Source: Rebecca billardiae RCC1528 (taxonomy: Eukaryota; Protista; Haptophyta). From it: DNA of 64,000 nucleotides. Of this stretch, positions 4,395 through 52,602 are shown one piece after another. Numbering within the stretch: the first letter of the stretch is position 1; each line of letters starts with the position of its first letter. The stretch spans positions 1,116,001 to 1,180,000 of the forward strand of contig OZ251222.1 in assembly GCA_965240325.2 (NCBI GenBank), given 5' to 3'. Below the pieces are notes generated by a model, which saw only the letters and a program-made list of their open reading frames with translations, was not told the DNA's origin and did not search any database. Made by a program: the position numbers and the translations under genes.

Positions 4395-5630
4395 TCAGCA
4401 GCGCGCTGCGGGGTCGAGCGGCATGAGGTGTACGGTCGCGCGCAGGACGAGCGGCTCGTCCAGCCGGATGTGCTCCACGTCGTACGCCGGCTTGGGCAGA
4501 TGCGTCACCGGCGCGTACTGCGGGCCCGCGCCGTGCTCGCGCAGCGCGCGCATCAGCACGGCGGCCATCTTGGGCTTGACTTTGCGGGAGAGGCTGTCGA
4601 CGTCGGTGATGTGGTAGATGACGGCCTGCGGCTCGTAGTGCTCGTCCTTCTCCAGCCCGTCGACCGCGCTCACCTCCCAGAACGAGAAGGCGGAGCCGCG
4701 CGCGCCGCGGCCGCGCGGCCGCGCGATGTGCAGCCAGGGCACATGCACGACAACGGCCCGACCCGCCGCCTGCGCCTGCAGCCGCTGGAGCGCGGCGACG
4801 CGCGCGCGGCCCCCACCGGCCGCCGGGGGAGGCACGAGCGTGACGTGGAGCTGTGAACGCCCGTCGACGCGCGCGCAGGCCCAGTTGTACCGCAAGTTGC
4901 CGCCGCCGCCGCCGCCGCCGCCCTGGCCGCCGCCCCTACTGCCGGTGCCCTCAAGTGCTCGCGCGAGCTCGGCGGTGCTCACGCCGCTCTCGGCGGGTGA
5001 CGCACCCGCCTCGCCCGCGCCCTCCTCCTCGCCCGCCGCCCCCGCAGCCGACACCGGCGCCGCGCACCGCCGCGTGATCTCGTCCGCCAGATTCGCGAGC
5101 TCGTCCGTGATTGGCTGCTCGGAAGTCCGGAAGAACGCGTCGGTGAGCAGGGCGCCGGGCAGCCTGGCGGAGTGCGCGCGTGTGTCGGAGGCGCCACGCC
5201 AGAAGTCCGCGAAGATGCGCATGGCGTGTGCCTTGCCGCCCTTCTTGTAGTTGTGAGTGTGCAGCGCGATATGCGACGGAGGGCGCGCGGCGATGCGCTC
5301 CCAGCACAACTGTCGCTCGCTGTCGCCGAGGGCACTCGGGACGACCAGGTGCAGCCGCACGCTCATCGAGTCAGGGCCGCGCTCGAGCCCCGTGAGCGTG
5401 CGCACGAGCTTGCGCAGGCCGGTCACGTCCGGGAAGTTCTTGTCCGCCGCGACCACCGTCGAGCCGCGCGCCGCCGTCGCGAGCGCGGCGCTGAAATCCT
5501 GCCCGCGCGCCCGGCACTCGTCGGACGACGCGACCGCAAAGCCGCGCTCACGCAGGGCTGCGACGAGCGTAGACTTGCCGCCACCGGGGGGCAGCGACGC
5601 GCAGGCGACGACGTGGACGACGCGGCGCAT
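4395..5630 (-). CDS. Stand-alone polynucleotide kinase + 2H cyclic phosphodiesterase (partial duplicate of the tRNA ligase gene, no ligase domain)
   Basis: ATG at 5630 opens a 411-aa frame highly similar to ~16813-18117; P-loop LPPGGGKSTL, ADKN, and 2H motifs HVTL and YHIT retained. Could be a recent pseudogene. Confidence 0.6.
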   Translation of the reverse strand: MRRVVHVVACASLPPGGGKSTLVAALRERGFAVASSDECRARGQDFSAALATAARGSTVVAADKNFPDVTGLRKLVRTLTGLERGPDSMSVRLHLVVPSALGDSERQLCWERIAARPPSHIALHTHNYKKGGKAHAMRIFADFWRGASDTRAHSARLPGALLTDAFFRTSEQPITDELANLADEITRRCAAPVSAAGAAGEEEGAGEAGASPAESGVSTAELARALEGTGSRGGGQGGGGGGGGNLRYNWACARVDGRSQLHVTLVPPPAAGGGRARVAALQRLQAQAAGRAVVVHVPWLHIARPRGRGARGSAFSFWEVSAVDGLEKDEHYEPQAVIYHITDVDSLSRKVKPKMAAVLMRALREHGAGPQYAPVTHLPKPAYDVEHIRLDEPLVLRATVHLMPLDPAARC

Positions 5631-5685
5631 TCGGCCGGAGGACGATGCGGTACTTCGCGTCAATCCCGTTCAGCTTTGTGCAGCT

Positions 5686-16808: not shown

Positions 16809-18194
16809 TCAGCGCATGAGGTGTACGGTCGCGCGCAGGACGAGCGGCTCGTCCAGCCGGATGTGCTCCACGTCGTACGCCGGCTCGGGCAGCTGCGTCA
16901 CCGGCGCGTACTGCGGGCCCGCGCCGTGCTCGCGCAGCGCGCGCATGAGCTCGGCGGCCATCTTGGGCTTGACCTCTCGCGAGAGGCTGGCGACGTCGGT
17001 GATGTGGTAGATGGCGGCCTGCGGCTCGTAGTGCTCGTCCTTCTCCAGCCCGTCGACCGCGCTCACCTCCCAGAACGAGAAGGCGGAGCCGCGCGCGCCG
17101 CGGCCGCGCGGCCGCGCGATGTGCAGCCAGGGCGCATGCACGACAACGGCCCGACCCGCCGCCTGCGCCTGCAGCCGCTGGAGCGCCGCGGCGCGCGCGC
17201 GGCCCTCGCCGGCAGCCGCCGGGGGCACGAGCGTGACATGGAGCTGGGAGAGCTCGTCGACGCGCGCGCAGGCCCAGTTGTACCGCACGTTGCCGCCGCC
17301 GCCGCCGCCGCCCCGGCCGCCGCCGCCCCGGCCACCGCTGCCGCCGCTCGCCTCAGCCCCGGTGCCGGGCGGCGTGCCGGGCGCGGGCGGCGGCGCCGGT
17401 CCGGCGCTGCTGCTACTGCTGTAGGCGCCACGTCCGCCGCCGCCCTCGAGCGCGCGCGCGAGCTCGGCTGTGCCCACACCGTACTCGGCGGCTGGCGCGC
17501 CCGCCTCGCCCGCGCCCTCCTCCTCGCCCGCCGCCTCCGCAGCCGACACCGGCGCCGCGCACCGCCGCGTGATCTCGTCCGCCAGATTCGCGAGCTCGTC
17601 CGTGATTGGCTGCTCGGAAGTCCGGAAGAACGCGTCGGTGAGCAGGGCGCCGGGCAGCCCTGCGGAGCGCGCGCGCGTGCTCGAGGCGCCGCGCCAGAAG
17701 TCCGCGAAGATGCGCATGGCGTGCGCCTCGCCGCCCTCCTCGTGCGTGTGCAGCGCGGTGTGCGTCGGCGGGCGCGCGGCGATGCGCTCCCAGCACAACT
17801 GCCGCTCGCTGTCGCCAAGGGCACTCGGCACGATCAGGTGCAGTCGCACGCTCATCGAGCGCGGGCCTCGCTCGAGGCCCGTGAGTGTGCGCACGAGCTT
17901 GCGCAGGCCGGTCACGTCCGGGAAGTTCTTGTCCGCCGCGACCAGCGTCGAGCCGCGCGCCGCCGTCGCGAGCGCGGCGCTGAAATCCTGCCCGCGCGCC
18001 CGGCACTCGTCGGACGACGCGACCGCAAAGCCGCGCTCGCGCAGGGCTGCGAAGAGCGTGGACTTGCCGCCACCGGGGGGGAGCGACGCGCAGGCGACGA
18101 CGTGGACGACGCGGCGGCGCGGCGCGGAGGGTGAGCTGCGCGAGCTGCCGCCGCCACCGCCGCCGCCACGCTCGGCCGCAGCGGGCTGCGCGGC

Positions 18195-18225
<31 letters not shown>

Positions 18226-20237
18226 TCGGCCGCGCCGCCGGCCGACGCGCCGCCGCGGCCGCCGCCGCGGCCGCCGCCGCGGCCGCCGCCACCGCCGCCC
18301 TCGAGTGTGGTCGCGCACTCGCGCAGGAACTGCTCGGGCGTCGTCGGGCCGAAGAAGACGCGCGCGCCGCAGTGCTCCTCGGGCGTGCGCGCGCGCATCG
18401 TCGCCCAGTGCGTGCGCGCCTCCGCGCCCCCGCCGCCGCCGCTCGGCGCGCCCTCCGCGTCGGCCTCGGCCGCCGCGCCCGGAGGCGGCAGGCATAGAAC
18501 GACCACGGCCGCGGAGCCGCGGAGCAGCTGCCGGCCCGGCGGGCGGTCGACCTCGACGAAGCGGCCGGCGGCGGGGCGATCGCGCCGCTCGGCGCGCACC
18601 ACGCCCACCTTCTCCAGCTCGCGCCCCCACTCCTCCCCCAGAGGCGCCCCGCTGAAGTTGGCGAGGACAAGGAAGCGGCGCGCGAGGGGAGATTGCATCT
18701 CGATCGAGACCGGCGCGCCATGCAGATACGGTTCGAGGAGGGTGAGGTAGGAGGTGCCGAGCTGCGAGCTGGCGCGCGCGGCGGGGAGCGAGCCGACGTA
18801 CCGCGCCCACCCCGCCAGCGTCGCGCGCACCTCCACGCGCTCAGCCTGCGGCACGCTCCAGTTCTCGAAAAAATTGTCTACGCGCCGCATGTAGGCGCCG
18901 GCGCCGCCGTCGAGCAGCGTCGGGATGTGTGCGCGCACGCCGAAGGTGCGCGTGATGTACGCGAGGCACTTGAGCTTGGTCACGCCGAGCATGCGCGCGC
19001 CGCCCGTCGGCGGCGCGCCCTCCGCGCACCCCGACTGCGCCGTCCCCTTCGGCCGGCGCAGCGGCATCGTGCCCCCCAGCTGAAGCACCAGCCCCCGATA
19101 CAGCTCGGCCGCCTCGCCGCGGCCGTGCGTCGCGCTCCACACGAAGAAGACGTCGTCGTCCTTGACCTCGACCTGGATCTGCAGCGCGCCGCGGTAGCGG
19201 TACGTCTTGAGGTGCACGGCGTGCGCGTACGACGCGCCGAGCAGCGTGAGCAGCCGGCCGTACGGCCCCGCGCCGAGGGTGCCGGGCGCGCGCGCCGCAT
19301 CCATGAGCATGCAAATCTCTTCCTGTAAGGGCGAGGCTGCGCGCTCGGGCTCGGGGTGCGGCAGCCAGCCGAGCGGCTGCTCGAGCACGGCCTTGAGCTC
19401 GGGCTCGCCCGCGAGGCACCGCCGCCCGAGCGCGAGCGCCGCGTCGAGCGCCGCCTGCCGCCGCCCGCCCACCGCCGCCTCGTATGCACCAAGCAATTGC
19501 GCGAGCGCCGCCGCGCCGGGCACCGCGAGCGCGAGCAGCACAAAGCCCTCGAGGACGGCGCCCTGGACGGCGCTGTGCGGCAGGAAGGCCTGCGAGAGGA
19601 AGTGCGGGGACGCGCCCGCCCCCGCGTCCGAGCCCGCCGCGTGCCCGCCCACCGCGCTGCCCAGGATCGCCTCCACGGCCTCGCCATCGTCGTGGAGCTT
19701 CCAGCGCGCGGCTCGGAGCTGCGCCTCGACCTGCGCCGCCTGGCCCGCGGGCACGAACCACGCCTCGTTGAGGGGCAGGCGCCAGCGCGTCGCGACGGCG
19801 AGCACCTCGAGCGGCGAGAGGAACCGCCCGTCCAGCGTCGACGCCACCGTCGTGAGCACCGCGTACGCGCCGGCCGGCGTGGCGCCATGATCGCCCAACA
19901 CGCGCGGCACGACAACCTCGAACGAGTAGCACAGGCCGTACGTCTCGGCGTCGGCGTACCACGTGGCGAAGACCGCGTCGCCGCCACCATCCTCGCCCTC
20001 CCACACAGCGCGGAAGTGCTCGCGCAGCACCAGCGCGCCCATGCGCGAGTAGCGGTTCGCCACGCCGTTCTTCGAGTAGAAGGGAGGCGCCATCACGAGG
20101 CTGCCGCTGTGCTTCTTGGTGACCATGAGAAAGCCATCGGGCTCGGCGTCGACGCGCGGGCCGAGCAGCTTGTCCTCCGACTGGTTGCCGAACTTGGGCA
20201 GGAAGTGCGCGCGCACGAAGAGGCCAGGACTCGCCAT
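16809..20237 (-). CDS. RNL: Plant/fungal-type trifunctional tRNA ligase (adenylyltransferase-kinase-cyclic phosphodiesterase; RNL/Trl1-like)
   Basis: 1142 aa, intronless; KHSGSL..SKNGVAN, VLGDHG, WRLPLN and VQGAVLEG resemble plant tRNA ligase; P-loop PGGGKS, ADKN; 2H motifs HVTL and YHIT. Confidence 0.85.
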
Positions 20238-20365
20238 CGCCCTCGGCCGCCCGTCGCTGTGTCTGTCGCGAGCCCGAGCGGGACCGGGATGAGATTGGGG
20301 AGAACAAAAGTCCGGGATTCGGGAGCTGTCATCCAGCGCAGGATCGTCCGGTCAAGGGGATATTC

Positions 20366-38354: not shown

Positions 38355-38478
<124 letters not shown>

Positions 38479-39821: not shown

Positions 39822-42800
39822 ATGCGCGTCATGCCGGCGGCGCTGTGGCTTCTGGCACCTACGCTGTCGGCGAGCGTGCGCGTGCGCATCGTCCTTCCCT
39901 TGGCGACGGAGACGGATCATGCCATCGCGGCTCTGGATGCGCTCGAGCGATGGAATCTGGCGCCTGCGTGTGCTGGCGTCACGCTGTGGCCGGTCGACGT
40001 GGTGGACTCGCGCGACGACCCCGGCGCCGGCCTGCAGGCGTTTTTCGAGGCGCACGAGGCGGGTGTGCACGCGATCGTAGGCGCGTCGCGCTCGGCGACC
40101 ACGCTCGCGATGGCGCGCGCCGCGCGCCACCTGCCCCTCCTGGTCGTGTCGCCGCGCTCGACCAGTGCCGCGCTGTCAGACGCGGCCGAGCTGCCGTACT
40201 TTGCGCGCACCGTGCCTTCGGACGACGTGCTAGCCACGGCGATCGTCGCGCACGTCGAGCGCCGCGGCTGGCGCAGCATCGGCCTCGCGTACGTGAACGA
40301 TGCGTTCGGCGCTGGCCTGGCTGTTTCGATCGAGCGCGAAAGCGAGGCGCGCGGCATCGCCCTCACGCGCAGCGCGTTCGAGCACGACGAAGGCGACGAG
40401 GCGATCGGTGCGACTATGGGGCGGCTCACGGGCCCGGACGGCTCGCCGCTGTGCGTCGTCATCATCGCCGCGTGCGGCGCACACGTGCGCGCGCTCGCCG
40501 ACGGCGCCGCAGCTGCGGATGTGCCGAGCACGCGCGGCCAGTTGGTCCTGGTGGGTCCGGACCCGACGGCGCTGGTGCGCGAGGCGACGAGCGAGCACGA
40601 GCGGCGACTGCTGAACGGCAGCGTGCTGATCGAGGCGACAGGCGACGACCTCTCTGGCCGCTTCGAGCGCTACGTGAACCAGACGTGGCGGGCCCTTGAT
40701 TCTCGCGCGCTGAACAAGCACCTGCCCGCGCGTGCGCACGTGAGCGCGAGCCGCTTCGGCGGCGCGCACGCGCCGCCGGCGACGGTGCTCTTCGCCGCCG
40801 ACGCTATGGAGACGATCGGTCGCGCGGCGTGCGCGAGCGCCGCGCCGCCCACCGACGCCGCCGCGCTCTCCGCCGCCGTGCGCACCCTGCAGTTTGAAGG
40901 CCTCTCGGGGAGAGTCGCCTTCGACTCGAGCGGCTCGCGCGCGCCGGGCAGCGCGGCCGTGGCGCTGCTCCGCGTGCAGTACGGCGAAGGCGCGCACGCG
41001 GAGGTTCTTCGCGTGGGCACGTTCGGCCCGGCGGGCTGGGTCGAGGCCGCGCAGCCGAAGCGCGTCGCCCACGCCTTCGCCTCGGACGCGGGAGGGGCGC
41101 TCGGCGGCGCGGTGCGGCGCGCGCTGACGGCCGACGGTGGCGCGGAGGCGAGTGCGGAGGGCGAGGGCACGACGGCGATCAGCGGCGCGCACCTCGAGCG
41201 CGACGGCGAGACGGTCTTCATCGTGCTCCTCGTCGCCGTCGGCGTGCTCGGCGCCGCGCTGTGCTGCGCGCTCGCGCTGCTCGCGCGAGACCGCTGGATG
41301 CACCGAGCGGCGCTGCGCGCAAAGGCTGCCGAGGTGGCTGCCTCGGCCTCGAAGAGCAGCGTGCCGCTCGTGATCATCTCGGACGCGGGCGAGGACCTGG
41401 ACGACGAGATGGCGCTGCTGCTCGCGCACTCGCTCCAGGTCGAGGGCCACATCGAGCTGCTCGGCGTCGTCGCGAAGTGCGCGCTCGCGCGCGCGCCGCG
41501 GCACCCAGCACGGGCGCGCGCCGCCTCGCGGCAATCGCGCGATGACACACTAACCCCCGCCGCGCTCCGCTGCGCCTCCCCCGCGCTCGCGCAGCCTCAC
41601 GCCCGAGGTGGAGCGCGCGCGGCTGGTCCGCGGCACGCTGGACGTGCTGGGCATGCAGCACGTGCCGGTGGGTATCGGCACGGACGGCGGCAGCACGTCG
41701 CACGCCGCCGCGTTTCTGGAGAGCGCGCGGTACGCGACTGCTCTGCATTCGGAGCGCATGCACGCGCTCGAGCCCGGGCGCGCGCTGCTGCACCGCGTGC
41801 TCCGCGCGGCGGAGGACAAGTCGGTCACGCTGCTCTGCATCTCGTCGCTCAAGGACGCCGCGCTGCTGCTGCGCGACAACCCGTCGCTGTGCGCGCGCAA
41901 GCTGAACCGCGTGGTGGTGATGGGTGGCGTCGACGTGGAGGCGAGCTCGCGCGAGGGGTATCTGATACCGGACGACGCGCACAACAACACCTTCGACAAG
42001 GGCGCCGCGGCGTACTTCTACCGCGGCTGCGTCGCGCTGGACATCTCGACGACCATCGTGACGCGCCACGCCGCGTACTGCGCCCCCGTGCCCCGCGAGA
42101 CCTACGACCAGCTCGCGCAGTCGGGCAACCCGATCGGCTGGCGTCTGCGTAAGGCGCAGCGCGACTTGATCGAGGATTTGTGGCGCCGCTCGTGCGCGCC
42201 GCCGGGCTCCGCAGAGCGCCGCGGGCTGCCGGACCGGTGCACCTCGGGCTGGTTCTCCACGACCTTCTGCGGCGGCCGCGTCGAGGCGGAGAGCCGGCAC
42301 GCGGAGGACCCGATCTGGGATCTCGTCGTGAGCTTCAACCTGTGCGCGCGGCGCGGCGCGGCGCGCGGCGCGCGGCGCGCGGCGCGCGGCGCGCGGCGCG
42401 CGGCGCTCGGCGCGGCGCGGCGCGCGGCGCGCCCCGCGCCTCCGCTTTGGGCGCGCGCAGAGATGCATGCTCACCACGCCCGCGCTCCTCCACACGCCGC
42501 GCGCGCCGCGCGCGGCGCAGGTACGACGTGGTGGCGCTGTGCGCGGCCGTGCCAGCGCTCAGCTCCAAGCTCTTCTCGCCCACGCTGCTACCTGTCGGCG
42601 GGGCGGTCGTGCCCGAGTCTGCGCGTCGCTCGTCGTCGGAGGAGAGCGCTCGCGGGGGCGAGGGCGGCGCGGAGCCGAGCGCCGAGAGCCGGCGCACCTC
42701 GCGCCGCTTCTCGCAGTCGCTGCGCAGCTCGCTGCAGCGCCGGCTCACGGTCAGGCCCGCCACGCCGCGGCTGCACGCCACGCACTACCTGATCGGCTCG

Positions 42801-45623
42801 TCGGCCGAGCAGGCGGACGTTCGGGACTCGGAGGCGCTGCGCGCGTGGATGCAGCGCGGCATCGCGCGCTCGGTCGGCGTGGAGCAGGGCCGCTCGCACC
42901 GCTCGGCGCGCGAGGCGGTGATGCTCGTGCTACGCGAGGACGCGCGCGCCACGCCCGAGCACGGCACCGAGCTCACGCTGCTCGCGCTGCGTGCGCTGCA
43001 GGAGTTCGGCGCGCTCAGCTGCGCGACGCTGCTCGTCATTCGTCAGCAGGCGCGGCAGACGCGCGCGCGCGTGCGCCCGTCCCGCGAGCTTGGCGAGGGG
43101 TCGGCCGGCGCGGAGGGCGACCCCGCGGCGCGGAGCGAGCTGGACGACGGCGCGAGCGACATCGGCGCCGACGCGGACAGCGGGCGCAACACCGCGCGCG
43201 CCACAGACGTCGCGCCCTCGCCCACGCTCGCGCTCGCTGCCTCGCTCGGCATCAAGCCGTCCGGCGGTGCGCTCGTGCTGACAGACGATGACTTTGACTC
43301 TGGCGCGGGCGGCTCGATCGCCGAGCTCATCCAGGCGTTCAACCGCACGCAGGCGGGGGGCGTGCGGCTCGTGCTGCCCTCCGGCTGCCCGCGCCTTCTC
43401 GAGCGGCTGGCGCGCACGTGGCCCAAGCTGTTCCGTGAGAAGATCGCCGAGGTCGTCGGGTTGGTCGAGGCGGGCGCGGACGCGCCACTGAACATGCGTC
43501 AGTCGCGCGTCACACCGGTCGACACGCCGACCGCCGCGTCCCGCGCGCGCCCGACCAGGCTCGCCAAGGAGCCGAGCCACACGCAGATGCACATGTCGGC
43601 GGACCACGCGGACGTGGTCAAGCGGCTCCGCGCGTTCTACGCCACGCTGCCGACCAGCCCACTGCGCAAGTCCCGCCGCTCGACGCGCAGCGTGCCGGGC
43701 GAGCTGCGCTCGCCGCGGCGCGCGAGTCGCTTCCTCGAAGACGTGACGACCGCGCGCGTGAGCTGCGCGTCGAGCAGCGGGCTGCAGTCCATGTCGACGT
43801 TCACGACGCAGACGTTCGGCGGCAGCCTGCCCAGCCTGCAGACCAGCGACAGCCCGCGGCAGACGACCGACAGTGCGCCGCACTCGGCGCGAGAGGCGCG
43901 AGCCAGCCGGCAGGCGCGCTGGGGCGTGGGCGAGACGCAGGCTCGCACCGCGCCGCGCGCGCCCGAGCGCCCTCTCACGCTCGCCGACGAGGTGGAGCAG
44001 GACGCGCAAGGGTCGCGCGTGGGCAGCATGAACGCTCGCCAGACCGCGTGGACGCCTCCGGGCGCAAGCGCGCGCCCGTCCGGGCTCCGCGGGACCCGCG
44101 CCGGCGCGGGCGGGCGGCTGAGCGGCGGCGGCATGCGCATGAGTGGCCGCATCAGCGGGTACGGCTTCGGCAGCGCGCTGCCGCGGATCAGCAGCGCAGG
44201 CGGCTCGGCGCAGTGGACCGACGCGAGCGTGGAGGCTCGGAACATGCTGCGCGCCAGCCGCTTCAGCCGCGCGTCCGGCCGCGCGAGCCGCGTCTCCAAC
44301 GACACGGCAACCACCTCGCTCCCAACCGTGACCTCTCCGGAAAACATCGCCGCGCGCGAGCTCGGACATGTCTCGGAGATTGTGCAGCCGACGATCGTGG
44401 AGGGCGGCTCGACCGGCGAGCTGCGCGCGGAGGGTGGCTCGGCGGCCGACGCGCTCCCCGAGGGCCTCCCGGACGTGCGCATCGTGCACACGCCGACCGT
44501 GACGAACACGCCGGCCGAGACGCCGCCGCTCTCTCCCCTGAGCGGCGCAGAGCTGCCCGCTCGCGCCCCGCCGCCTCCGAATGGCGTCAGCGCTCAGCTC
44601 ACCGAGGCTGCGCTGCGCCACTACCAGCAGGGCCCGCGCCCGGTCCTGCCCGGCCGCGAGGCGCAGATGCTCCGGATCGTGCCCGCGCCGCCGACCGCCT
44701 ACCCGGCGCATCACGGCAGCCAGATCGCACGCCAGTGCTACCACCTGGGTGTGCCCGTGCTCGCGACGCCCGGCGCGCTCGTGCGCGCGTGCGCGCTGCC
44801 GCGCTCGGTGGTCGACGCACTGAGCCAGCTCTCCGGCGACTTTGGGCGGCAGCTGCACGAGAGCGTGCGCGCGCCGATCGAGGCGTGCGTGCGCGCCGCG
44901 AGCGGCGCCGACGAGCGGCGGCACGAGAGCCTCGTCGCGGTCTCGCGCGGCTGGGTCGAGGAGGAGTATGGGACGAGCCAGCGGCCCGAGCCGCCGCCGC
45001 CGGGCGAGGTTGCGGAGACCGCGCGCAGCTTCAGCCACGTGCGCTCGGGCCGATGGACGTCGCAGCGCAACTCGCGCCGGAATTCGGACGGGCAGGAGCG
45101 GCTGGGCGTGGGCAGCTTCATGCGCCGCCAATCGGACGGCCGCTGCGTCGAGGCCCCGCCGCCGGTCGGCAAGATCGACGAGGGGGACGAGGCACAGGAG
45201 GACGAGGGCGGCGCGGCGCGCACCGCGCACTCGCAGGCGTGGGCCTCCGTCCGCGCCGTGCCCGCGTACGGTCCCGTGTGCCTCCTGGCCGTCGCGCAGC
45301 GCAGCTGCGGCCGCCTGTTCTTCCAGCAGCAACGGGTCGCCAAGGTGCGCGGCACCGTGCACTTCCGCCTCGGCCCCGAGCCGATGATCGACTCGTCGGA
45401 CGTGGTGGCGGTGCTGGCGCACCTCTGCCTCAAGGGCGCGACGCTGAACGCGCACGCGCTCACCGCCGAGGCGCCGCCCCCGACGGCCACCGGCGCGTTC
45501 GCGTCGGGCATCGACTGCGCCGGCGTCGGCTGGGTGCCCCTTGCGGACACGGTGCCCGTGTGGCTCAGCGCGGTGGCGCCCGGGCGGCGCTCGTCGGTGA
45601 TCTCGCTTGCCGGCACGTACTAA
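39822..45623 (+). CDS. Receptor-like protein: signal peptide + ANF-receptor/Venus-flytrap domain + TM + nucleoside-hydrolase-like domain + degenerate second copy; exons 39822-41476, 41595-42341, 42521-45623 (1834 aa)
   Basis: AIVGASRS, SPRSTSAALSD..PYFARTVPSD, GWRSIG, FEGLSGRVAFD; TM ~41212-41285; IISDAGEDLDDEMAL, VANLTP (across intron), VVMGG, HNNTFD, FNLYD (across intron). Confidence 0.85.
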
Positions 45624-45782
45624 CGGGCTACTCTTGAACATGAAAAGCCGCCTCACTCACTCACACTGCTGGCAACACTCGTTCGACAGCGGTTCGTGTC
45701 AGTCGTCGCTCGCCGGCGGCACGTATCTCCTTGTTGGCCTTATTGGGGAAGCAGATACAGCTATAGTAGATGATATTATTTA

Positions 45783-50028: not shown

Positions 50029-50799
50029 CATAGCCTGAACCGCGATCGAATGGCTTGAGCGCGGCCTTGAGCTGCTGGAGCGCGATCCACCTGCGCTGCG
50101 CGGCTCGCATGGACCTGCTGTGCCCCGAGCGAGGGCGAGGGTGCAGGTCCGGATTGTGCCCTGCGCGAGTAAGAAAACATCATGGTGCTGGAAACATACT
50201 TTAAAACTGGAAACCCACTATAACTGTCTGGCAGCGCCATCGTGCCGACGTGCCCACGGCCCACGTGCGCGAATTTGTGCGACATTCACAGACGAGGTCG
50301 CGGTCCCCGGCCGCTCCGACGCGCTCTTGACTTCCGCGTGGAACGTGCGGAGGTCAAGAACACATCCTACTCGTCGATGGTGCCGACCTCGCCGCCCTGA
50401 ATGTCGCACAAATTTGAGATTGGCACCTCGGGCGTGGGCCGCGACACGCATGCCAGGTCCGCGCGGCGCTCTGTGGGCAAGCGAGCCAAGGGGCGCAGCG
50501 AGTCCGGTGCGGCTGTCGTACGGGTCGATCGCGAGCGCCGAGTCGCAGCCGCGCGCGCGCCGCGCCGCTGGCGCCGGGTCGCCCGGGGGAGAAGGCGCCG
50601 CTGCAGCGCTCCTTCTGCCATCACGCGATCCGCCGGCAGGAAGACCTGACTTGCGCCATTGCGCCCAGTTTCCCAGAAGCGCTGAATGAAGCCGTCGCCG
50701 ATGCAAGCAAAGGGTCTGCAGCTGGACCGGTTGGTCGGAATCCTGAAGCAGGCAGCATCACTTTTGCTCGCGGCGCGCCGGCGGGCGGCGGCCCACACA

Positions 50800-52602
50800 A
50801 TGCGCGGCGTATCCGCGCCCTGCGCTGCGGGGGTGCTCGCAACCCTCGGAGTTATCGCCGTCTTCGTCGCCCGCGCGCCGCCGCCGTCTTCGCTGCCCGC
50901 CCTCGCCGCCTCGCCCGCCTCGGCAGCTTCGGGCGCCGCCAGTGCCGGCGTCGTGCACACGGCGTGCGGCGCCATGCAGGGCGCGCGGCTGGAAGGGGCG
51001 GAGCGCGTGTGGGCGTGGCGCGGCATCACGTACGCGCACGCCGAGCGCTGGGCGCCGCCGACGCCGAGCGCGTGCGACCCCGCCGCCGCGCTGGACGCGC
51101 GCGCGTGCGCAGCTGACTGCGTCCACATCGACCCGTTTGGCGGCGGCGGCATGGTGGGCGAGGAGGCGTGCCTCACGCTGACCGTGCTGGCGCACGAGGA
51201 CGCGCTCGCGCCGGGCGCGCCGCCGCTCCCCATCCTCTTCGCCCCGTCAAACGGCGGGCTCGCCCACGGCTCGGCGTGCGACTCGACCTTCTACGGCGCG
51301 CCGCTCGTGCACTGGGCGGCGGAGGCGCGCGCCGTCGTCGTGCTCGCCGCGTTCCGGCTCGGGCCGCTCGGCTTCCTGTACCTCGAGGCGGAGGGGGCGG
51401 AGGGCGAGGGGGCGGCGGACGCGGGGCTGCCGCGCGGCACCGCGAATAACGGGCTGCGCGACGTGGTCGAGGCGCTGCGCTGGGTGCGCGCGCACGGCCG
51501 CGCGTTCGGAGGCGACATTGCGAGCGTGACCGTCGTCGGCCAATCATCTGGCGGCACCGTCGGCGCCGCGCTGCTGATGAGCCCGCTGGCGTCGGGGCTG
51601 TTCCACCGCGCGTGGCTCTCGTCGCCCTCCGTCGCCTTCGGCACGCGCCGCGAGGCGAGCGCGGGCTGGTGGCGCGCCCTCGGCGTGGGCGAGTCTGCCG
51701 CCGCGTGGCGAGCCGCCAACTGCTCCACTGACGCGCGCGCCGTCGCGCGCTGCCTGCGCGAGCTGCCGGCGCGCGACGTGTACCTGGCGTTCGACGCGTA
51801 CGCGGTGCAGGGGGAGAGCCAGTTCGAGGTGCCCACGCGCCCGACCGCCGCCGGGCCCAACATCTTCCCCGTCTTCGCCGACGGCGAGGTCATCGCGCTC
51901 TCGCCCTCGCGCGTGCGCGACGCGCCGCCATCCCTTCTCGCCCAGCTGCCCGCCGCGCGCGCGGGTGCGGTCGTGGGCGCGGCGCGCGAGGAGATCGAGG
52001 TGCTCTACCCCGGGCCGCCGCCGTCGCTGCAGCCGTTCGACGAGGCGCACGTGCGCGCCTGGGCGGCCGCGCTCGCGCCCGAGGACGCCGGCCTCGGCGC
52101 GCGCGTGTGGCGCGCATACGAGCCCACAGCCGACACGGCCGCGCCGCAGCGGCTGCTGCAGCTCGGCTCTGACCTGCGCTTCGTGTGCGCCGCGCGCCAG
52201 TTCGCGCTCGACCTGGCCGCGGCGCGGCGGGCGGGGCAGGAGGCGGCGCCGGTGTACTCGTACGTGCTCACGCACGCGCTCGCCTCGCCGCTGCCGCCCC
52301 TGGCGCCGCCGCCCGCACCCCCGCTCTCGCACGCCTTCCACGGGCTCGATTACTACGTCCTGCTCGGGAACGCGATGGGCGCGCCGCTCGGCCGCGCGGA
52401 CGAGGAGGTGGGCAGCCGGCTGCGCGGCGCGTTCGTCGCGTTCGTGACGAGCGGGAGCGTGCCCAGCTGGGCGCAGGCGGCGGACAACGCCACGTGCGAC
52501 GTCGGCACGCTCGCGGACGCGTGCTCGGCCTCGGTCAAGGCGGCCGAGTGCGCCGCGATCCGCGAGGGCGGCGCGGCGGACGCGTGGGCGTGCGCGTTCT
52601 GA
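50800..52602 (+). CDS. Type-B carboxylesterase (COesterase family), secreted or signal-anchored
   Basis: EACLTL, FRLGPLGFL, NNGLRDVVEALRWVR, nucleophile GQSSGG, HAFHGLD; hydrophobic segment after ATG 50800 (ORF opens at 50686). Confidence 0.9.
   Translation: MRGVSAPCAAGVLATLGVIAVFVARAPPPSSLPALAASPASAASGAASAGVVHTACGAMQGARLEGAERVWAWRGITYAHAERWAPPTPSACDPAAALDARACAADCVHIDPFGGGGMVGEEACLTLTVLAHEDALAPGAPPLPILFAPSNGGLAHGSACDSTFYGAPLVHWAAEARAVVVLAAFRLGPLGFLYLEAEGAEGEGAADAGLPRGTANNGLRDVVEALRWVRAHGRAFGGDIASVTVVGQSSGGTVGAALLMSPLASGLFHRAWLSSPSVAFGTRREASAGWWRALGVGESAAAWRAANCSTDARAVARCLRELPARDVYLAFDAYAVQGESQFEVPTRPTAAGPNIFPVFADGEVIALSPSRVRDAPPSLLAQLPAARAGAVVGAAREEIEVLYPGPPPSLQPFDEAHVRAWAAALAPEDAGLGARVWRAYEPTADTAAPQRLLQLGSDLRFVCAARQFALDLAAARRAGQEAAPVYSYVLTHALASPLPPLAPPPAPPLSHAFHGLDYYVLLGNAMGAPLGRADEEVGSRLRGAFVAFVTSGSVPSWAQAADNATCDVGTLADACSASVKAAECAAIREGGAADAWACAF

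Follow-up and report, generated by a model that had tools for sequence, protein, structure and literature searches.

Among receptors that couple an extracellular Venus-flytrap domain to an intracellular enzyme through a single helix, the natriuretic-peptide receptor guanylyl cyclases have a pseudokinase that separates the catalytic domain from the membrane, and to our knowledge the outputs of Venus-flytrap single-helix receptor-enzymes are cyclases or short tails only. The enzyme domain considered in the present work resembles the bacterial type III effectors XopQ and HopQ1 of the nucleoside hydrolase superfamily. According to a preprint of June 2026, XopQ splits 2' cyclic ADP-ribose (2'cADPR), a TIR product and immune signal molecule, at its 1''-2' O-glycosidic bond, yielding ADP-ribose (ADPR) at a kcat/Km of 1.4e7 per M per s; it is inactive on 3'cADPR, pRib-AMP, canonical cADPR and 2',3'-cyclic nucleoside monophosphates, and the D120N/D399N mutant is inactive (10.64898/2026.06.15.732069). 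HopQ1-like proteins (HLPs) are defined by the motif DXXXDXDD replacing DXDXXXDD (PMC11685791), and their presence in algae, among them Emiliania and Aureococcus, was noted in a paper in which the word "transmembrane" is absent (PMC6019455). Here, we analyzed a stretch of 64,000 nucleotides from the haptophyte Rebecca billardiae RCC1528 (contig OZ251222.1, positions 1,116,001 to 1,180,000 of the forward strand; hereafter the window, numbered from its first letter), which contains a gene joining a Venus-flytrap sensor, a membrane helix and a XopQ/HopQ1-like domain.

The gene spans positions 39822-45623 on the + strand and comprises three exons with 5502 coding bases, corresponding to 1834 codons (Table 1). 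Sensor and hydrolase belong to one nuclear gene, and the product is a type I protein that crosses the membrane once, with the Venus-flytrap domain outside and a nucleoside-hydrolase fold in the cytosol. The cytoplasmic part is a tandem, in which a degenerate copy comes after the intact domain. An earlier note on this DNA had proposed a signal peptide, an ANF-receptor-type ligand-binding domain, one transmembrane segment directly followed by a hydrolase-like domain with an acidic cluster, and a splice model joining conserved motifs in frame, and the evidence presented below agrees with each of these proposals. Exon 1 alone encodes the sensor, the helix and the initial 38 hydrolase-domain residues, among them the acidic cluster DAGEDLDD, so that no splicing is needed to form the junction between sensor, helix and hydrolase. 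The linker from the helix to VPLVIISDAGEDLDDEMALLL has about 25 residues. This arrangement effectively rules out that sensor and enzyme are two separate genes, although an internal promoter is conceivable.

Because the window is very GC-rich (0.52-0.81 per 2 kb), both strands carry long open reading frames (ORFs) that cannot serve as evidence for a gene, and coding status was judged by codon-position GC, not by ORF length. The ATG at 39822 is the earliest start codon downstream of a stop in frame; from there, all 1834 codons are stop-free and a strong bias in third-position GC (GC3) is found in that frame alone. The GC3 values are 0.90 in exon 1, 0.95 in exon 2 and 0.86-0.98 throughout 42522-45620, falling from about 0.9 to about 0.55-0.65 directly past the stop codon at 45621-45623, and both introns are without codon-position GC periodicity. 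An end of the gene near position 42900, as suggested previously, does lie just beyond hydrolase domain 1, but it would take in under half of the gene, since the GC3 pattern shows the frame running on to 45623. An antisense ORF of 908 codons over exon 3 (42930-45656, - strand) was set aside as a side effect of the high GC of the coding strand, given that it is the + frame that carries the coding-type GC bias.

The start at ATG 39822 is followed by an N-terminus that was judged by eye to be signal-peptide-like (MRVMPAALWLLAPTLSAS). Exon 1 matches ANF_receptor (PF01094) with E 2.5e-30 and 106 bits, well over the cut-off of 25.4, and Peripla_BP_6 (PF13458) with E 3.1e-14. Among PDB sequence matches of the ectodomain a LivJ-like bacterial receptor leads (3e-10), followed by mGluR6, GABA-B1/2 and T1R3, and the ectodomain contains two N-x-S/T sequons (N265 and N286) and four cysteines. 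Its segments GASRS and SPRSTSAALSD align with GASASS/GASGSS and SYASTAPELSD of mGluR6/7, motifs whose Ser and Thr contact the amino-acid ligand in mGluRs. This match is a lead to a possible amino-acid-like ligand. The helix V465-A488 is the sole segment above 1.9 on the Kyte-Doolittle scale in any of the three exons, and its flanks, acidic outside and basic (RDRWMHRAALRAK) inside, indicate an N-out/C-in topology. Two word-index protein searches with the ectodomain gave zero matches; low-complexity words probably dominated these searches, which makes them uninformative on relatives.

Regarding the enzyme, exon 2 matched XopQ chains only in the PDB (4kl0, 4p5f and 7jlu; E 2e-20). A family alignment (A1), in which the three exon pieces were placed as separate rows together with 33 intron-free homologous domains, produced a profile that reached E 1e-72 to XopQ structures versus 1e-7 to canonical inosine-uridine hydrolases. 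The cytosolic part matches no Pfam family other than PF01156, which on exon 2 alone scored E 9e-8 and 32.6 bits, just below the cut-off of 34.2 because the domain extends beyond this exon. Modeled with AlphaFold2 from a 40-row alignment, exon 2 reached a predicted local distance difference test score (pLDDT) of 95.2, and Foldseek searches with this model returned XopQ on top (template modeling scores of 0.72-0.74, E 1e-11) and canonical nucleoside hydrolases next (about 0.5), in line with a nucleoside-hydrolase fold of the cytosolic domain. The acidic cluster follows the HLP motif DXXXDXDD and departs from the canonical DXDXXXDD, since in S-D-A-G-E-D-L-D-D a glycine occupies the second canonical Asp position. 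Judged from these profile and model comparisons, domain 1 belongs to the XopQ/HopQ1-like (HLP) clade and is not a canonical inosine-uridine hydrolase, which replaces the enzyme class assigned in the earlier note.

The catalytic residues were mapped by the family profile; short exon pieces compared with the PDB gave chance matches only. In the profile alignment, DPNKDPDD and NLYD of XopQ correspond to 4p5f chain positions 35-42 and 315-318, and with an offset of 81 positions 39 and 318 of that chain become D120 (the motif's second Asp) and D399. The equivalent of D120 is D525 (in EDLDD), and that of D399 is the Asp of 'LYD' at 42525-42527, as placed by A1 and by the profile against 'NLYDPL' of XopQ; both are kept in domain 1. 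Moreover, at 48 positions a residue is conserved in 80% or more of the relatives, and exon 2 keeps 46 of these residues. By this mapping, domain 1 retains the calcium-binding and catalytic residues.

The splice model can be followed column by column in A1. The end of exon 1, VPLVIISDAGEDLDDEMALLLAHSLQVEGHIELLGVVA, covers the opening columns of the domain; exon 2 begins exactly one column later (LTPEVERARL...) and ends with ...VVSFN, and exon 3 begins one column after exon 2 (YDVVALCAAVPAL...). The two skipped columns are the conserved N of VANLxPA and the conserved L/M of FN[L/M]YD, and the split codons provide both. Additionally, a JGI contig encoding an OpuAC-type homolog (L001) and an ORF from an MMETSP transcript (P0151) are continuous over both junctions and 69-70% identical across exon 2; at the site of intron 2, P0004 and P0151 read continuously as VVSFNLYDVVAL. 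Both introns of the gene have the donor GTGCGC, and intron 2 consists mostly of a GC-only 7-mer tandem repeat, (GCGCGGC)x10.6, at 42356-42432. The L001 contig keeps an intron of its own at 1400-1560, between 'RGTLDL' and 'LGMQAV', a site without an intron in the gene described here; this third position indicates that intron positions vary among these relatives.

Table 1. Location of the exons, introns and predicted protein features of the receptor-hydrolase gene (positions in the window).
Feature	Positions	Strand	Description
Exon 1	39822..41476	+	551 codons + 2 bases; continuous ORF; GC by codon position 0.76/0.55/0.90; from a signal-peptide-like start through Venus-flytrap domain, membrane helix and juxtamembrane stretch to the initial strand and helix of hydrolase domain 1
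Venus-flytrap / ANF_receptor (type I periplasmic-binding-protein) ectodomain	39915..41021	+	residues ~32-400
Single transmembrane helix V465-A488	41214..41285	+	maximum Kyte-Doolittle 2.89
DAGEDLDD acidic cluster	41382..41405	+	residues 521-528; DXXXDXDD motif; aligned to XopQ DPNKDPDD through the family profile
Intron 1	41477..41594	+	118 nt; GTGCGC..CAG; phase 2; split codon AA|C = Asn
Exon 2	41595..42341	+	core of XopQ-like hydrolase domain 1
Intron 2	42342..42520	+	179 nt; GTGCGC..CAG; phase 2; split codon CT|G = Leu
Exon 3	42521..45623	+	ends with stop codon 45621-45623
Exon 3, initial part	42521..42887	+	C-terminal portion of hydrolase domain 1; alignment A1
Ser/Arg-rich loop insert in domain 1	42600..42779	+	60 residues
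Second, degenerate hydrolase-like domain	42909..45476	+	exon 3 residues ~130-985; hhalign, phmmer
C-terminal tail and stop codon	45477..45623	+	ORF end; GC3 drop downstream

The remainder of exon 3 encodes the degenerate copy. Columns 198-377 of the family profile aligned with exon 3 residues 733-984 in hhalign (90% probability, E 1.5e-6), columns 118-162 were colinear with residues 267-312 (E 4.5e-4), and phmmer matches of exon 3 were colinear with the second domains of many tandem homologs. In this copy the D399 equivalent is a Gly ('AYGP') in the profile alignment; when the two domains are paired by eye, 'GT' stands in place of the motif's DD, and PD.A.NN.FD is unrecognizable. A low-complexity disordered insert of about 400 residues interrupts the second domain at about 43479-44696. 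Exon 3 also carries nine RRx[S/T] sites of the basophilic-kinase type, compared with 2.1 +/- 1.4 in shuffled sequences; they fall at 42600-42779, 43670-43720, 45070-45130 and 45585-45596, all in loop inserts or the tail, and this enrichment hints at a possible phospho-regulation. Two further matches in exon 3, to the Pfam family SUKH-3 (sub-threshold, E 0.04-0.2) and to a dsRBD-like PDB entry (E 0.38), were taken as chance.

A full HMMER scan with exon 2 retrieved 987 representative clusters at E <=1e-3, of which 172 were at E <=1e-30, and the Pfam architecture of relatives was determined for the long proteins among the top 150 representatives, plus one word search. Three relatives, so far unnamed in public data, share with the gene described here a chassis of helix, linker, intact domain and second domain, and differ in their ectodomains, none of which is ANF_receptor: the complete transcript ORF P0151 (1559 aa) has an OpuAC substrate-binding ectodomain, KFE25_002800 of Diacronema lutheri (P0184, 2408 aa) has a PBP_like_2 ectodomain, and a protein of 2341 aa from an 11.5 kb Logan-assembled contig (P0007) has a Laminin_G_3/cadherin-like one. 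In all three a membrane helix lies just ahead of the motif, the region of helix and linker is alignable with that of the present gene, and exon 2 is 64-70% identical to the corresponding sequence. A maximum likelihood tree of 48 domains grouped the four in one clade with 100/99 support. Taken together, these comparisons point to one membrane-anchored chassis that would have acquired different ectodomains. The combination of ANF_receptor with a XopQ-like hydrolase in one protein was found in none of the scanned relatives, which covered the top 150 representatives and one word search, and the ANF version thus appears, so far, in this genome only. A metagenome scan with exon 1 recovered only loci with the N-terminal motif of the hydrolase (L002-L005), none of which carried an ANF domain or represented a transcript of the present gene.

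The XopQ-like domain also occurs in other fusions, with TPR arrays, with Guanylate_cyc-AAA_16-TPR modules (STAND-type), with a protein kinase or with NUDIX (P0179, P0119, P0198, P0102, P0073, P0098 and P0135), and the NUDIX family includes ADP-ribose pyrophosphatases. Such fusions suggest a context of signaling or conflict. Tandem domains are common in the family, and the second copy is degenerate in L002 and P0151 as well. The soluble relative at 1089-4223 of L005 carries two apparently intact tandem XopQ-like domains (DPGEDLDD and DAGQDPDD), which shows that the second domain is not always degenerate.

Compared with XopQ and HopQ1, the protein is alike in fold, clade, the calcium-binding DXXXDXDD motif and both essential Asp; however, it is a eukaryotic integral membrane protein rather than a secreted bacterial effector, adds an extracellular sensor, a membrane helix, a degenerate tandem copy and large disordered inserts, and its activity is predicted. 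With the natriuretic peptide receptors and receptor guanylyl cyclases it has in common an ANF_receptor ectodomain, one helix, and a cytoplasmic enzyme paired with a pseudo-enzyme, and the closest language-model neighbors of exon 1 are NPR-C clusters (score 0.89). In contrast to these cyclases, the enzyme precedes the pseudo-enzyme, and the output would remove a messenger instead of making one; neither a Pkinase (kinase-homology) nor a Guanylate_cyc match was found in any exon at E up to 10. The ectodomain is also similar to those of class C GPCRs (mGluR, GABA-B, CaSR and T1R; E 1e-9 to 1e-6), and its lobe-1 motifs GAS.S and S..STS..LSD match mGluR6 and mGluR7, but the protein differs from this class in having a single helix, no 7tm_3 (no PF00003 match in the exons) and no cysteine-rich domain. 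Literature searches on HopQ1-like proteins or XopQ in algae, haptophytes and eukaryotes, with most subscription journals outside the coverage, found no paper on receptors of this design. The suggestion of an undescribed receptor class stands as far as the papers covered are concerned, whereas the receptor-type layout itself is not unique to this locus, considering that relatives with other ectodomains are already in public data.

Around the gene, a functional link to the neighboring genes was sought and none was found, neither with a QueA-QueH fusion upstream nor with a carboxylesterase-family gene downstream (50686-52599, + strand; PF00135, E 2.3e-45). A perfect (AT)60 microsatellite lies at 38357-38476, about 1.3 kb ahead of the ATG, where the intergenic sequence is low in GC (0.52). 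Besides, three long frames on the - strand (16812-20351, 548-1834 and 4398-5669) show a strong coding-type GC3 bias and have no Pfam match at E <=0.001.

The best overall explanation, which we hold with moderate confidence, is that the gene encodes a ligand-controlled receptor-enzyme that breaks down a 2'cADPR-like signal. The ectodomain would bind a small solute, possibly amino-acid-like, and the ligand would rearrange a receptor dimer, a change that the short linker and the pseudo-enzyme domain may relay to the activity in parallel with the natriuretic-peptide receptor cyclases. Beneath the membrane, the intact domain would hydrolyze a ribosyl-linked nucleotide messenger, modeled on the conversion of 2'cADPR to ADPR by XopQ, and the pseudo-domain and the RRx[S/T]-rich loops may be regulatory. 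From the sequence, the best-supported substrate class would be a ribosyl-linked nucleotide signal such as 2'cADPR, and by analogy the enzyme more likely ends or shapes a signal than creates one. An outside cue would thereby end or tune a TIR-type nucleotide signal.

Several points weigh against this explanation. The activity of XopQ was reported in one preprint. Exon 2 and XopQ share just 26-28% identity in their structural alignment, so that the substrate specificity may differ, and exon 2 changes at two family-conserved positions (Q146V and P151S). On the side of the sensor, a single-sequence fold of the ectodomain reached a pLDDT of 39, and dimerization and ligand coupling are proposed by analogy.

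Other readings of the same gene also deserve consideration. A non-catalytic role, with the XopQ-like domains as a docking platform or as binding sites for a nucleotide, for instance ADPR, and the protein as a sensing or scaffold receptor, seems to us unlikely: XopQ was crystallized with ADPR bound (title of 4p5f), catalytic residues are gone from the second domain and the RRx[S/T]-rich disordered inserts suggest regulated protein interactions, but domain 1 keeps the four Asp of the motif, the D399 equivalent, the NN/D residues of the ribose site and all but two of the 48 conserved positions, which is the pattern that selection on catalysis would leave. Membrane-tethered nutrient salvage, with an ordinary nucleoside hydrolase releasing bases and ribose and a Venus-flytrap domain that senses or captures a nutrient, would mean metabolism rather than signaling, and we consider it improbable. 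It would fit with PF01156 being the sole Pfam family of the cytosolic part and with the ectodomains of relatives, which come from nutrient-binding families (OpuAC and the phosphate-binding PBP_like_2); however, the domain groups with the XopQ/HopQ1-like clade and has DXXXDXDD and not DXDXXXDD, XopQ and HopQ1 reportedly do not act on standard nucleosides or nucleotides (10.64898/2026.06.15.732069; PMC6019455), a cytosolic enzyme behind an outward sensor is unsuited to scavenging outside nucleosides, and relatives are fused to STAND/TPR modules. An annotation artefact or dead gene, with sensor and hydrolase on different transcripts or as an unexpressed pseudogene, is very improbable, for although no RNA run is listed for the stretch and the high GC yields chance long frames such as the opposite-strand ORF of 908 codons over exon 3, the junction lies in one exon, the 1834 stop-free codons carry a GC3 bias in this frame only that is absent in the introns and past the stop, the conserved residues are intact, and a 69%-identical homolog of like layout is a complete transcript ORF.

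Returning to the receptor-enzyme that would degrade a 2'cADPR-like messenger, a XopQ-type glycohydrolase would be a new output for Venus-flytrap single-helix receptor-enzymes, and the presence of four different ectodomains on one chassis offers a natural experiment on the coupling between output and sensing. More tentatively, it is possible, if doubtful, that haptophyte-type algae run a TIR-style messenger network in which sensors are wired to signal makers or breakers, and that this gene represents a new class of receptor-enzymes destroying a 2'cADPR-like messenger, with swapped ectodomains on one chassis. Eukaryotic relatives of XopQ behind a sensor would suggest that this chemistry is a host signaling tool and not a pathogen weapon alone, and the gene provides a testable entry to nucleotide signaling in marine algae and to its off-switch.

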